Shown: positions 33,201-39,200 of the stretch, piece by piece
Layout: each line of letters starts with the position of its first letter
Numbering within the stretch: position 1 is the first letter of the stretch
From: Macrostomum lignano
Taxonomy: Eukaryota
Length of the DNA stretch: 64,000 bases
Direction of reading: 5' to 3'
Assembly (NCBI GenBank): GCA_002269645.1
Contig: NIVC01000059.1
Span: 806,001 to 870,000, forward strand
Position numbers and translations under genes: made by a program
The notes under the pieces: generated by a model
What the model was told of the DNA's origin: nothing
The model's input: the letters and a program-made list of their open reading frames with translations, nothing else
The model's database searches: none

Positions 33201-36200
33201 TATCTATCTATCTATCTATCTATCTATCTATCTATCTATCTATCTATCTATCTATCTATCTATCTATCTATCTATCTATCTATCTATCTATCTATCTATC
33301 TATCTATCTATCTATCTATCTATCTATCTATCTATCTATCTATCTATCTATCTATCTATCTATCTATCTATCTATCTATCTATCTATCTATCTATCTATC
33401 TATCTATCTATCTATCTATCTATCTATCTATCTATCTATCTATCTATCTATCTATCTATCTATCTATCTATCTATCTATCTATCTATCTATCTATCTATC
33501 TATCTATCTATCTATCTATCTATCTATCTATCTATCTATCTATCTATCTATCTATCTATCTATCTATCTATCTATCTATCTATCTATCTATCTATCTATC
33601 TATCTATCTATCTATCTATCTATCTATCTATCTATCTATCTATCTATCTATCTATCTATCTATCTATCTATCTATCTATCTATCTATCTATCTATCCTAC
33701 GATCTATTCGAATACTTAAAGGTAATTTATTGTGTCTTAAAGAGTCCGTTTTGTTGAAAAAGGAAGCGTCCAGACTTTTTTAGGAAAATTGTAATAGTAT
33801 CATTCCGTACGTAAATGTCACGGTGTAAGTCAAACTGACTGATTGATCCCAGAAGTTAATCCTGCGATGGTCTAACCTTGCTTTAGTTTGAATCCACATA
33901 TAAACTGCTGTCAAAACTTTTTTTGTCTAACAGATACCTTCAGTTGGCTAGGAAAGAGACTGATGTACGGCCGCATGAAGCTATAAAGCATTCATTGACA
34001 GCCAGACAATAATATTTCGAATAATAATATTGGAATACCTCCATAAGCAGAACTGGTATCTAGGATTTTAAGAAAAATTTACCCTAAGTAAATATGAAAG
34101 CCAAAATGATAAAAAAGCTTGTATTCTTTTTTTTCAAGTAAACACCAAATTCCGTTAATAAAAACTGCATCTTACTACTAGTAGTAGGTAAAATGCGAGT
34201 AGTACATGCGTAAAATTCTCATTACCTCAAGTAGAGAATGCAACGTGTCGTCTTCGAATACGCTCTGCAACAGCTCTCGGTCGCGTTCGGTACAGTCGGT
34301 GAGGCACTGGATCTCCTCCAGGCTGTCGAGAATGGCTGACACAGCTGTCAATCATTTGGGTTGAGTATGGCAATATTGATTGGTTGTATAATTATCAAAG
34401 TGACAAAAAGCTATTCACGTGTTGACAGTTGCGTCATTGAATTGGCCCTTTAAATTCTCGTATAAGCTAAAGCGGAATGAGTTAAAGCGGAAGTGACCGA
34501 ATAACAAAACTTTTAAAACTGAGGTCAGCCAACTCTGGGCGCGAGGATTCGCTATCCGGCCGTCGCGGGGTCCTTTGAAACTTCACAATAGCAATCAGAC
34601 CGACTCAAGGTTTGTCTTCTCAGTTGTCTTCTCTTTCTCTCGCATTTCGTCTCCCATCTCCCCTCTCCTCTCACCCCTGCTTCATCCTCTCCTCTCCCAT
34701 CTCCTCTCTCTCATCTGTCATCTCCCCTGTCCTCTTTATTCTTCCCCCTCCTGACCGCAGTCATAGATTATACGTCAATATTTTAATCCCCAATTCAAGA
34801 AGCAAAGAGATTCAACGAATTCATCAATAAATTTGATGGGATTTTAAAAAAACCCAGAAATTTGCTGACTTCATCAGCCAAAAGATTCTGCAATAAACCA
34901 GTATGTAACGTGTATTTTGTAAATTTAAACTTGTAAAACAGTTTTCTTGAGGAAGAAAAGGAGGCGTGTAAAAGCATTTGAAACAGAAGTTGAAAAGGGA
35001 ATTAAAAAAAAGTCGTCCAACTCCAACAATGGAGACAGCCATCACGAGTCGATCTCGCAGTCCAGGTGGCCCATTCTGTCTGTCGGGCTGCTAGCTGGCA
35101 GAAAGGACACCACTTTACAGCCGGTCACAGCTGCCGCGGCCAATTCGAATTTGTTACCAAACAATTGGCGCCTAAAATTGGCGCTGGCGCCGGTCACACC
35201 GCGCCGGATTCGATGACGCGCCGATCTGCGCTGGCGCCGATTCAACCAAAACATTGGCAGAGTGACTAACAGACTCTGCAACAGGTGACCAGCTAGTTGC
35301 AAGTGACGCAGCCAGCTGGGAGCTAGGCCAGCCGGGACTAGGTCTAACAGCAAGTAGGCGCCAGTTAGCGCGCTAATTAGCGCCAAAGATCGGGCCCAAC
35401 GCGCCGGCCCAGGACAGGTTTGGCGAGGCGGCAATGACAGGCGCAGAGACTGGGCGCCGAGCACCATGGAAACGAGATGGGCGCTGGCCAACGGCAGACG
35501 AACTGACGCGGTGTACAGCGACACGGGCTCTGGTCGGTAGAGCGCCGAGTATTTGTGCAATTGAGCCAGCTGGCCCGGCGCCAAAGTTCGACAGACCAGA
35601 TGCGCAGTGGCTACGACTACAGGCAGCGGCCAGGCCAGAGACAGCAGCTCGAACAGCGGCTGACGCTTTCGTCTCGGCGGCGACTGACAAGCCGGCTTGT
35701 GTCGGCGGCCCAACCGATGTCGGAGACAAATCGACTGGGCTAGGAATGAGGCGAACAAACCGGCGTAGGATAGTACTTCCAGTAGTTCGAATAGTGCGTC
35801 CAAGGATAGACAGGCGTCTCGGCCTAAGCAACGAACCGATGGCCAAGACAGTAGGCGACCGGAGCGGCAGAGGAAATAGGCGCAGTAGGCCCATAGTAAC
35901 TGGCGATGCACGGCGGCTAAGCGACCCCCAGGTAGCTGACGGAGAGCGCACAGACCAATGAGAGTAGCTAGCAGTACCAACAGGCCAATTAGGCAAAGAC
36001 CGATTTCCCACACAGCTAGATGACGCTGGCTGGCTAAATAAGAATTCAAACTGCAGAAAGTTTCGCATAGGCTAGCTGAATCGGCATAGCAACCGTCTAG
36101 TACGAAGAGATCGCCAGCTCGTAGCGGTACAGCCAAACTAGTGTTAGGCTTTAAATTGGCGTAGAAGCTTAGCCAGGGCTTGTCGGGACAAGCGTCGCCT

Positions 36201-39200
36201 TTTAAGCGCTGCGACGACGGCAATTGTTTAAACAGCGGGGAAGAAAACGGATCCGAACAGGAGGAGAGCATTGCCGATCTTTATAAACACAAACAGGGGC
36301 CTGTCTTGACTTCTACTGCGGTTGATTTTATTTATTGATGAGGGGTTGCATCAGTGCGCGTGAACGCAACTTGTTCGTATCGGGCTTTCCTTTATCAACA
36401 GTTAAATGTACATTCATCTTGATTCTAAATTGGGGTGGTTGGTTTGACTAGCTCGTAGCATAAGGGCTGGGGTTAGAGGGTAAGAAGAGAAGAGATAGAA
36501 ATAAGAATGTACATTACCAATGTACAGTGTAGAGGCCGAAAGGAATTATTTTACTTTAGGCACGCCAGGGCGAATCAAAGTCACTTTTCTCTACCTATAA
36601 AAATCAAAACTCTGTGTGTGTGTGTGTGTGGACAATTTTGATCGCTATGGACTCCCAAACCACTCAACCAAATTACACCAAACTTTACACCCACCCTAAA
36701 CTCACTACGGAGAATGTCTTAGGCTACCTTTTAATTTCCTAGACTCAAGTCTTCCTACCTAAAAGTACAAAAAACTGCTCAAAATGCGCGATTTTTTCAC
36801 TAAATCCTCCATAGCGCCGCTCCACTTCTACCGATTCTCTTCAAAATTGACACAGGCAATTTTCAACTATTTTGACACAATCGTGTAAAATTTCAAATCT
36901 CAAAGTTAATCCTGAAAGCCGCTGTGCACTTTTAAAGTTTGGCTGTTTTTTTCAGCGAGGCAGCCACCCCAACCTCCGCCCGCCTGCCTCTCTTTCCCGA
37001 TCTGGGCAAAGGGTGTGAATCAGGTTTTAAAATGCCTAACTTTCGGTTGCCATAAGTTTGCTCCACGTGAAGCGATTGACTTCTAACTTAACACAATTCT
37101 TCTTTGATTCATTCTCTGTCTAAATGTAAAGTTTCAACTCTCTAACTCAATCAGAACAGAAACTGTAAGCATGTGAAGTTTGTCTGCTTTTTCTGTTGTT
37201 TGCCGCTCATCCAACTCATTCCCCAGACGAAGGGTCAGGCGATAGGGCTCAATGTACATAGCGAATGTACAGTGTTTTGGAATAACTTTTTAATAGCCTT
37301 CTCTGTACCCCCGCGAGTGGAGAGGCGTGGAGAGGAGAGAGTTTAGTGAGAGATTCAATTTCAAACCACTGTCCTCTGAATAGACAAGTCGCAGCAGTTA
37401 AACAGGGATGGCAAATCAAGGCGATGTGGGATGGTTTGTAAAAATATCGAAAAATTAATGAATGATTACTTGATTAATTAATGATTAATTAATGATTACG
37501 TACAATGCAATCCTACTAAATTAGTTACACCATGAAAATTTTAACATTAGGATTCGCATAAGGATTCGCATAACTTTAAAATTTAAATGGCCTCCTAAGA
37601 AATGCGCATTTCCATGGTTGTTAGACTGCTGCAGACTGTTGTGTTGGAGCTGGAGATATACAAATTTCTCTCAGGGCTGCTAATTGACCAGAAAGATGAC
37701 GTGATTAAAGCATGAGAAATGATAACAACCATGATAGTACTACGTCCCACAAACTGGCTTTCGAAGCAGGGATCGGCAGATTTTTATCTCAAAGGCCAGA
37801 TAAAGAATCCAGCTCATGGCTACGGGCCAGATGAGAGTGGAAAGGAGAAGGAATAGACTGTTGGAAAGAGAGGAGGGGCGAGAGAGAGGGGAATAAGAGA
37901 AATGATAGAAGATAACAAGAGATATGAGGGGTGAGGAGAGAGCAGAGAATATGCGAGGAAAAAGCGAGACGAGGGGAGAGAGGAAAGAGTAGAGGTGAGA
38001 AGAGGGAGAGAGAAGAGGGGAGAGATAAGACAGGATCGATGAGAGAGGAGAGTAGAGAAGAGTGAGATGAGAGTAGAGATGAGAGGATCGAGAGGAGAGA
38101 TTAGAAAGGATCAAGGAGAGGAGATAAGAGGGGGAAGAGGGGGGAGAGGAGTGAGAAGAGAGAGAGAGAGAGAGAGAGAGAGAGAGAGAGAGAGAGAGAG
38201 AGAGAGAGAGAGAGAGAGAGAGAGGGAGAGTTGAGAAAGAAGAGAGGAGAAAGGAGAGATGATAGAGTAAAGAGAAGAAAAGGAGAGAGGAAAGATATGA
38301 GATTGTAGAGATGAGAGATTAAGGAATACACAGCAGGGTGCAGAGAGACGAGAGAAGAGAATAGAGGGGAGAGAGTATAGAAGAGGGAAGAGAGGAGAGG
38401 AGTAAGGAAAGAGAAGTCAGAAGAGGGGAAAGAGAAGAGTACACAGGAGAGAGGGGAGTAGAGATGACAGAAGAGAGAGAGGGGAATGAGAGAGCAAAGA
38501 TGAGAATGAACAGACGATATATGAGAGGAGAGAAGTGGAGAGGGAAGAGAGAAGACAAAAGAGGGAGAGAGTATAGAAGAGAGAAGAGAAGAGACGAGAA
38601 GAGAGAAGAAAGGAGAGAGAGTCCTGAGTCAAAAAGGGGAAAGAGAAGAGTACAAGAGGAGAGAGGTGAGAGAACATATGAGAGTAAAGATGACAGATGA
38701 GAGAGGGGAGATGCGAGAGCAGAAACGAGAGTAAACAGGCGAGAGATGGGAGAGTAGAGAGAAAAGAGGAGAGATAAGAAATAAGATATGAGTGGAGACA
38801 AGGGAGAGATGAGAAGTGAGTGAGAAGAGAGGAGGGGAGGGGAGAGAATCGAGAGGACAGCGGAAATTGGTGAAAAGGATGAGAGAGGAGAGGAAAGAGG
38901 GGAGAGATTAGAGAGATGGAGGAGAGAGCAGAGATATGTGAGGAGAGAGAGCAGAGAGAAATGAAAAAAGACAAGAGAGAAGAGAAAGGAAGAGAAAGGA
39001 GAGATAAGAGAGCAAAGACGAGAGAGAAGAGAGTTGAGGGAAGAGACGATAAGAGAGATGAGAGGAGAGAGAAAAGAATAGAGGGGAGAAGGAAGAGACG
39101 AGAGAAGAGGGGAGAGAGGAGAGAGGAGAGAAAAAGAAGAGATGAGAAAAGAAGAGAAGAGACGAGAGACGAGAGAGAAGAGACGAGAGACGAGAGAGAA

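Follow-up and report, generated by a model that had tools for sequence, protein, structure and literature searches.

The stretch of DNA analyzed here (the window) comprises 64,000 nucleotides (nt) of the Macrostomum lignano genome (GenBank assembly GCA_002269645.1, contig NIVC01000059.1, positions 806,001 to 870,000 of the forward strand), and it carries on its minus strand an open reading frame (ORF) of 409 amino acids (aa) within an intron of the gene for the synaptic scaffold CASK. On balance, the ORF is best read as a genuine gene with a single coding exon that is known to date from Macrostomum only, lies sense-oriented within the CASK intron, and probably encodes a membrane protein. We have good confidence that the 409-aa frame is translated and that purifying selection acts on it; the ORF is very likely a functional gene. 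A first-pass annotation had described it as a highly divergent secretin-class seven-transmembrane (7TM) receptor; this label, or that of any other G-protein-coupled receptor (GPCR), is unsupported for the predicted product and, on sequence criteria, is refuted by the annotation's own test (no 7tm_2 or GPCR-fold match).

The ORF listing confirmed the 409-aa frame of the first-pass annotation, which runs from ATG to TGA on the minus strand at 35042-36271. Because the minisatellite arrays of the window yield artefactual ORFs of up to 1186 aa, a repeat control on this frame matters. The ORF contains no tandem repeat, an internal repeat or a further copy was looked for within the window and none was found, and the ORF is none of the window's minisatellite-derived artefactual ORFs. 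Chance openness was estimated using Markov-1 simulations with the ORF's own composition, in which 13.5 stops were expected per 409 codons and the probability of 409 open codons was approximately 1e-6; the remaining five frames across the same stretch contain 9-32 stops each. The ORF forms a GC island (57-65%, versus approximately 40% in the flanks), with GC fractions at the first, second, and third codon positions of 0.61, 0.51, and 0.60; the corresponding values for the CASK exons are 0.62, 0.39, and 0.65. Its GC content agrees with that of the CASK exons, unlike that of the introns. A scan of the whole window against Rfam returned no matches.

The sole database relative of the ORF product is a 98%-identical hypothetical protein of M. 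lignano, BOX15_Mlig018784g2, which is also 409 aa long and is encoded on two contigs of the same assembly (loci L001 and L002) inside a gene with Pkinase and L27 domains (CASK). The two loci are identical at 1230 of 1230 positions of the ORF and differ at 0-9 positions per 500-nt window of the flanks, with approximately 4.2 kb compared, which would fit a duplication of very recent date as well as redundancy in the assembly. The window holds a third, diverged copy, separated from the other two by approximately 5% neutral divergence, and its exact protein sequence, when looked up in public assemblies, was not on record. M. lignano has been described as a hidden polyploid (PMC10468722), and we take the window copy and L001/L002 to be homeologous copies of a recently duplicated genome. 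Homology between them ends near position 36585; farther upstream the sequence has been inserted or replaced and cannot be aligned. The conserved unit consists of the ORF, approximately 310 nt upstream of it, and the downstream sequence as far as the L27 exon, and the ORF has stayed intact in two or more of the diverged (homeologous) copies of CASK. A transposon or repeat origin was rejected, given the absence of tandem repeats from the ORF, of extra copies from the window and the paralogous loci, and of database relatives beyond the paralog; it is also contradicted by the finding that all three copies occupy the same CASK context.

Evidence for selection comes from the comparison of the window with L001. 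Over the 1230 nt of the ORF, 22 substitutions (1.79%) and no indels were found, whereas the 5' flank (307 nt) shows 4.9% substitutions and 6 indel events, the 3' flank (604 nt) 5.0% and 10 events, and the next intron 6.6% and 3 events. The L27 exon, which was compared over 126 nt, has neither substitutions nor indels. At the flank rate, 21.6 indel events would be expected in the ORF, and the probability of observing none is 4e-10. The changes in the ORF are 14 synonymous and 8 nonsynonymous, corresponding to a synonymous divergence (dS) of 0.044, a nonsynonymous divergence (dN) of 0.009, and a ratio (omega) of 0.21 (Fisher p = 2.7e-4), and they are distributed 7/2/13 over the three codon positions (chi-square p = 0.016). 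The dS of the ORF is near the intron divergence, as expected of neutral sites. Other frames, used as controls, gave omega values of 0.55 to 8, with the exception of 0.26 in the antisense frame that shares the wobble position, which contains 16 stops; only the 409-aa frame, of the six, is both open and marked by the low-omega signature. Seven of the eight amino acid changes lie outside the proposed helices, which is a trend only (P = 0.11).

The first-pass annotation had placed the ORF, as an intronless gene, inside CASK on the same strand, and this placement was borne out. The ORF lies between Pfam-confirmed Pkinase and L27 exons, wholly within the intron that separates the kinase/calmodulin (CaM)-binding exon from the first L27 exon, and it shares the minus strand with CASK (Table 1). 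CASK can be traced along this strand from the N-lobe of the kinase at approximately 63400 to the end of the guanylate kinase domain at 6077. At the paralogous locus L001, the annotated Pkinase+L27 gene likewise spans the ORF on the same strand.

Relatives of the ORF product were sought in several collections. Pfam-A (24,736 models, hmmscan, E <= 10) returned no match to PF00002 (7tm_2), PF02793 (HRM), or any other 7TM family (7tm_1, 7tm_3, Frizzled, the nematode Sr* families, insect 7tm_6/7, and others), although the HMMER filters hide matches above an E-value of approximately 0.1-0.25, so that no weak match and no match are indistinguishable here. The only lines returned were LRRCT (18 residues, E = 0.0037, sub-threshold) and LapA_dom. 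A phmmer search of 177,635 distinct PDB sequences (E <= 10) found no GPCR of any class, and the sole match was ribosomal protein L18 (E = 1.1). Only the paralog BOX15_Mlig018784g2 was recovered by exhaustive phmmer over 1.84e9 cluster representatives, by a word-indexed search of 5.8e9 proteins with the full-length ORF, and by the same search with the helical core at E <= 10. The gene ID Mlig018784g2 was not found in papers or supplements, and nothing on this gene was found in print.

As judged by these searches, the ORF product is a species-restricted hydrophobic protein for which no family can be demonstrated, in databases from which congeneric genomes and transcriptomes may simply be absent. 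The ORF has the properties of a taxonomically restricted gene, in that no homolog was detected beyond M. lignano and the reading frame bears a signature of selection in the one pairwise comparison. Flatworm proteins can hide orthology through fast divergence, and many such "hidden orthologues" are described in PMC5495077; orphan status is therefore no proof of de novo origin. Of the earlier suggestion that the gene is retro-derived or a lineage-specific orphan, the second half stands, the sole homolog being the M. lignano paralog. The first half does not, as no parent gene, poly(A) remnant, or flanking direct repeats were seen; with a parent gene undetectable, a retrogene origin is unsupported.

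The predicted product most likely resides in the membrane as an integral protein; one span is certain, and several more are probable, which would make it multi-pass. Helix 88-110 is a clear transmembrane (TM) segment with a Kyte-Doolittle (KD) value of 2.87, and helices 159-177, 209-227, and 296-314, which reach the classical KD threshold of 1.6, are probable; the proposed TM2 (mean KD 0.33, with two internal Arg), TM5 (peak 1.31), and TM7 (peak 1.19) are marginal. The claim of seven TM segments is weak: helix 88-110 alone is unambiguous, and the number of peaks is no more than composition gives. Seven KD peaks of at least 1.0 were found, while shuffling of the residues produced a mean of 6.0 (P = 0.33). 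Since a shuffled sequence gives the same count, the count of hydrophobic peaks was rejected as evidence for a 7TM protein.

The segregation of hydrophobic and basic residues does exceed expectation from composition. Relative to shuffled sequences, hydropathy variance (P = 0.0016), the best 19-mer (KD 2.87, P = 0.003), and the clustering of Lys and Arg (P = 0.02) are all elevated. Under a seven-helix topology with the N-terminus outside and the C-terminus inside (N-out/C-in), 27 Lys and Arg residues would be cytosolic and 12 external, 7 of the latter in the 87-residue N-terminus. An N-x-T/S sequon at N43 is present in the two copies, as NTS in one and as NTT in the other. Secondary structure assigned with DSSP to the full-length AlphaFold2 (AF2) model, which has a predicted local distance difference test (pLDDT) score of 37.8, comprises seven long helices (84-109, 115-136, 157-188, 206-229, 252-278, 288-309, and 319-349) whose positions coincide with the seven segments of the first-pass annotation. 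Seven is the single most likely number of spans, and we would put a compact seven-helix, N-out/C-in bundle at somewhat less than an even chance; this architecture would make a lineage-specific receptor-like protein possible. A Foldseek comparison of both low-confidence AF2 models (full length and helical core) with the PDB gave nothing at E <= 0.001, with best E-values of 1.2 and 4.9. As the models are too poor, this outcome is uninformative and provides no negative on a GPCR fold.

Several signals that could serve expression of a nested mRNA were located around the ORF. The best candidate for a 3' splice acceptor in spliced-leader (SL) trans-splicing ends in CCCCAG, one mismatch from the SL acceptor motif that has been published for M. 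lignano, [T/C]TNCAG (PMC8629364). L001 has CTCCAG at the same position, after a long polypyrimidine tract and 200 nt 5' of the ATG, and this fits the motif. The site may be used for SL trans-splicing. Two weaker candidates nearer the ATG, CGCAG and GACAG, are conserved, and both mismatch the motif. Downstream of the ORF, the AATAAA hexamer that the first-pass annotation had attributed to this gene, about 300 nt past it, is present at 302 nt past the stop but is absent from the paralogs. A segment of approximately 65 nt (34741-34805, minus strand) with the AATAAA (34740-34735) and an ATTAAA (34787-34782) is deleted in L001 and L002, and the AATAAA was rejected as a conserved poly(A) signal because the paralogs lack this segment. 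L001 has only a TATAAA 3' of the ORF, at +122, where the window has TACAAA/AATACA. Because the AATAAA is not conserved between copies, the earlier proposal that CASK could be truncated at this poly(A) site is weaker than it looked.

In the Mlig_3_7 annotation, RNA-seq transcriptional units were cut by TBONE into "gN" genes at SL and poly(A) sites that had been mapped experimentally, and models without coding capacity were dropped prior to GenBank submission (PMC5730564). That the paralog is already a gene model (BOX15_Mlig018784g2) in this RNA-seq-based annotation is an indirect sign of expression. It matches the window copy in its length, its CASK position, and its lack of a Pfam domain, and differs from it by the neutral divergence given above. 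The SL-resolved multi-gene units of M. lignano (PMC5730564, PMC8629364) resemble the present arrangement in the same-strand placement within a larger unit, in the ".g2" naming, and in a polypyrimidine tract followed by a CAG acceptor, with a fit to [T/C]TNCAG in the paralog. M. lignano operons consist of tandem genes approximately 100 bp to 1 kb apart (PMC5730564, PMC8629364), whereas the ORF is intronic and its maturation would compete with cis-splicing; intronic nesting would be a slight variation on the operon theme.

If the ORF is such a nested gene, its mRNA would most likely be cut from an RNA that is identical to the CASK primary transcript or overlaps with it, by SL trans-splicing at the polypyrimidine/CAG acceptor approximately 195 nt 5' of the ATG, with its own 3' end formed no more than a few hundred nt past the stop. 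Production of the nested mRNA and splicing of that CASK intron would be mutually exclusive on one precursor. The product would be anchored in the membrane by the very hydrophobic helix 88-110, with its Cys-containing N-terminus of 87 residues, including the N43 sequon, facing the outside or the lumen, and with the Arg-rich loops 183-204 and 274-292 and the tail 344-368 facing the cytosol.

Several points weigh against a nested gene for a membrane protein. As the ORF does not differ between L001 and L002, the evidence for selection comes down to one pairwise comparison, in which 22 substitutions could be counted. The product has a composition (L 20%, A 11%, S 10%, R 9%, P 7%) that a GC-rich non-coding frame, if translated, would yield too, and a codon-usage score relative to the CASK exons fails to separate the frames (0.036, 0.021, and 0.012). 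Six of the seven helices have only marginal hydrophobicity; on a crude sum over a biological hydrophobicity scale, their values of +4 to +7 do not improve on the best 19-mer of shuffled sequence, and insertion is clearly favored for helix 88-110 only. AF2 confidence is very low both for the full length (two-sequence alignment; pLDDT 37.8, predicted template modeling score [pTM] 0.22) and for the helical core alone (pLDDT 50.7, pTM 0.27). A canonical poly(A) hexamer common to the window and L001/L002 was looked for, and none was found. The argument for expression from the "g2" suffix rests on a naming convention, and no ortholog outside M. lignano was found in the 5.8e9-protein word index or by phmmer over the 1.84e9 representatives, in which congeners may be absent.

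Among the other explanations, a 7TM receptor belonging to some other class or to a new one, e.g., a macrostomid-specific chemoreceptor-like or rhodopsin-like orphan too divergent for sequence methods, was considered unlikely. A compact 7TM layout (seven AF2 helices, loops of 6-23 residues, and basic loops and tail that would be cytosolic) speaks for it, as do the flatworm "hidden orthologues" mentioned above. Lineage-specific flatworm groups of orphan rhodopsins (fwRhods/PROF-type), described in PMC6114109, share with the ORF product the restriction to flatworms and the lack of similarity to non-flatworm proteins. The fwRhods, according to that paper, keep core rhodopsin signatures, whereas the ORF has neither a 7tm_1 match nor a paralogous family. 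Against such a receptor stand also the lack of any Pfam 7TM family, the three marginal helices with a helix count not above composition expectation, and the lack of a fold established from the AF2 models or Foldseek. Lineage-specific chemoreceptor families are normally multi-copy, whereas within M. lignano the ORF has no copies but the homeologous ones.

A parallel for receptor genes in this position exists in vertebrates, where GPR34 and GPR82, coding-intronless genes for class-A P2Y12-like receptors, lie antisense in a CASK intron and have been conserved for 450 million years (PMC3247265). They resemble the ORF as coding-intronless genes for multi-helix membrane proteins in a CASK intron. 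GPR34 and GPR82 are, however, clear GPCRs of early-vertebrate origin in antisense orientation (PMC3247265), whereas the ORF is sense-oriented and has neither a Pfam 7TM match nor similarity to solved GPCR chains. Because the ORF product has no detectable similarity to any GPCR, the parallel is treated as probably a coincidence. A more ambitious proposal, that the ORF is the founding member of an unrecognized, macrostomid-restricted family of seven-helix receptors that have an N-out/C-in GPCR-like fold but have lost all sequence signal, made from the CASK precursor by intronic SL trans-splicing, was judged improbable. If true, it would mean that a flatworm independently reached an arrangement like that of the vertebrate orphan GPCR genes in a CASK intron, with the output of receptor and scaffold mechanistically coupled.

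It is distinctly unlikely that the ORF encodes no functional protein and is instead a frame left open by chance in a conserved element of the intron that is rich in GC (a regulatory element, or a transcript that is non-coding or of very young de novo origin) and was given a TransDecoder-based coding sequence (CDS) call. The strict orphan status, the composition, the non-discriminating codon usage, and the lack of a confident AF2 fold and of a conserved poly(A) signal would all suit this explanation, and ORFs of 231 aa and 175 aa overlap in other frames. It leaves unexplained the excess of synonymous and third-position changes and the occurrence of this signature in the one frame of six that is open. 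It is also at odds with the complete lack of indels, with the low probability of so long an open frame, and with hydrophobic/basic segregation above composition.

Use of the ORF as an alternative or terminal CASK exon, spliced through an internal acceptor to give a chimera of kinase and membrane segment, is very unlikely. The ORF is on the CASK strand and within the CASK transcription unit, and an AG does occur in its first 20 codons; the TCGCAG proposed earlier as a possible acceptor near 36210 was found at approximately 36216-36211, inside the ORF. It is, however, not preceded by a polypyrimidine tract, and an in-frame stop lies 3 codons 5' of the ATG. The first 20 codons are open in both copies and differ by amino acid replacements with no indels, and the GenBank paralog is a separate 409-aa product that begins with this ATG, while the Pkinase+L27 product annotated next to it leaves the ORF out.

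The remaining explanation is the one proposed by the first-pass annotation, a class-B (secretin/adhesion-type) GPCR whose 7tm_2 core has drifted past recognition. The most diagnostic class-B features include the TM3 Glu, the TM6 PxxG motif, and a disulfide between TM3 and the second extracellular loop (ECL2) with its Cys-Trp pair. As the annotation itself had noted, these are missing: Q179 stands for the Glu, ALTG (301-304) for PxxG, and the putative ECL2 (228-250) has no Cys, all of which presupposes an unverifiable helix register. Its statement that there is no signal peptide also proved correct, the N-terminus having no hydrophobic signal-like segment, and residues 1-87 contain five Cys (C5, C28, C61, C69, and C73), not a three-disulfide hormone-binding domain. 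The landmark residues cited in favor of class B are all present (CPDKPW 28-33, C61/C69/C73, H122, C148/C154, Q179, W214, P260, ALTG 301-304, Q325/Q332, and N344-RRQRR), but they are single common residues, loosely placed, in a product with 11 His, 17 Cys, 8 Trp, 28 Pro, and 16 Gln, and no tool gave them statistical support. The same loose logic fits class-A landmarks about equally (W214, P260, L-R-H after helix 3, and P339-x-x-W).

The PDB holds many class-B receptor structures. On the sequence side, neither PF00002 or PF02793 in Pfam nor a solved GPCR in the PDB was matched at E <= 10; on the fold side, the AF2 models are uninformative. Class-B chains (GIPR, GCGR, CRF2R, and ADGRG2) did occur in the Foldseek list, with E-values of 5-9 and probabilities of at most 0.08, and were rejected as noise, being scattered among glycine and GABA-A receptors (Cys-loop channels), TRP channels, and cytoskeletal proteins. 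The ORF product resembles class B1 GPCRs in the size of its helical core (approximately 260 residues), in its short loops, in the basic C-terminal segment that follows the last helix, and in having some N-terminal Cys; it has no 7tm_2 profile match, no HRM domain, no signal peptide, and no partner for a TM3-ECL2 disulfide. Flatworm class-B receptors have so far been recognized by ordinary tools (InterPro IPR000832 and BLAST with E-values down to 9e-46), according to PMC6114109. What speaks for a drifted class-B receptor is the compact 7TM layout, as for the other 7TM explanation, together with Cys in the N-terminal segment and atop the third helix. With the paralog as the only match among 1.84e9 representatives, this reading is very improbable, and there is no evidence for membership in class B or any known GPCR family.

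On the conservative reading, a nested Macrostomum-restricted gene would be one more lineage-restricted gene among tens of thousands of gene models, with a paralog already deposited. It would nevertheless be a clean example of an orphan ORF, with purifying selection demonstrated from sequence alone, sense-nested in a conserved synaptic scaffold gene of a trans-splicing organism. In sense-nested genes, one precursor has two fates, splicing of the intron or maturation of the nested mRNA, and this could couple the two products or trade one off against the other. The choice between these fates can be tested in M. lignano, for which transgenesis and RNA interference exist. The analysis also illustrates that, in a sequence rich in Leu, Ala, and Arg, the matching of landmark residues can point to a GPCR class for which profile, database, and fold methods give no support.

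Table 1. Features located in the window (positions are those of the window; coordinates of CASK pieces are conservative cores and not exact exon boundaries; UTR, untranslated region).
Feature	Coordinates	Strand	Description
Single-exon CDS, 409 aa	35042..36271	-	ATG 36271-36269, TGA 35044-35042; Leu/Ala/Arg-rich orphan; one strong and six weaker hydrophobic helices
CASK exon 5' of nested ORF	42284..42616	-	End of protein kinase domain and CaM-binding/linker; Pfam Pkinase E = 7.5e-10, profile positions 215-263 of 263
CASK exon 3' of nested ORF	34226..34351	-	First L27; acceptor ...ttgacag|CT, donor GAG|gtaatg; Pfam L27 E = 3.5e-5
Recognizable CASK coding pieces, whole span	6077..63412	-	Six-frame pieces located by translation
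CASK kinase pieces	63302-63412, 43961-44149, 43485-43661, 42284-42616	-	Translation
CASK L27 pieces	34226-34351, 17389-17511	-	Translation
CASK PDZ pieces	16327-16509, 13308-13388	-	Translation
CASK SH3 piece	11731-11868	-	Translation
CASK guanylate kinase (GuK) pieces	10671-10829, 8807-9073, 6077-6250	-	Translation; ends ...WIPVNWVY*
Upstream block homologous to paralogs	36272..36585	-	5' UTR/outron, possible promoter; three-way alignment
Best candidate 3' (SL trans-)splice acceptor	36467..36506	-	Polypyrimidine tract of approximately 38 nt, then CCCCAG; AG 36468-36467, 195 nt 5' of ATG
Two conserved weaker acceptor candidates	36301..36320	-	CGCAG (AG 36317-36316) and GACAG (AG 36302-36301); 29-45 nt 5' of ATG
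AATAAA hexamer	34735..34740	-	302 nt past stop; window copy only
Minisatellite arrays	6722-8768, 9237-10655, 11874-12923, 19616-22145, 24664-25910, 27230-29136, 44194-45012, 50035-53263, 57728-61493		

Other features of the CASK locus were recorded. A second long non-repeat ORF (22254-23807, minus strand), which encodes a Gln/Pro-rich sequence of 517 aa, has the same orientation as CASK and occupies a different intron of it, the one separating the first and second L27 exons; it coincides with a GC island of 52-62%, has no Pfam match, and may be a second sense-nested gene in CASK. The CASK introns contain nine minisatellite arrays with periods of 17-31 nt, 36-156 copies, and 88-96% identity, which together make up approximately 18 kb, or approximately 28% of the window, and give rise to stop-free artefactual ORFs on both strands. 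The 24-nt satellite at 6722-8768 shares its stop-free frame with the guanylate kinase exon at 8807-9073, forming one open stretch of 925 aa (6350-9124, minus strand), and a gene predictor could wrongly push the CASK exon into the satellite. In the same intron as the nested ORF, 1.7 kb 5' of it, a purine-rich (GA/GAGAGGA) low-complexity tract of 1.25 kb (37971-39225) shows extreme GC and AT skew. Past the 3' end of CASK, a stretch of 57% GC at 494-1335 contains overlapping ORFs of 261-274 aa on both strands.

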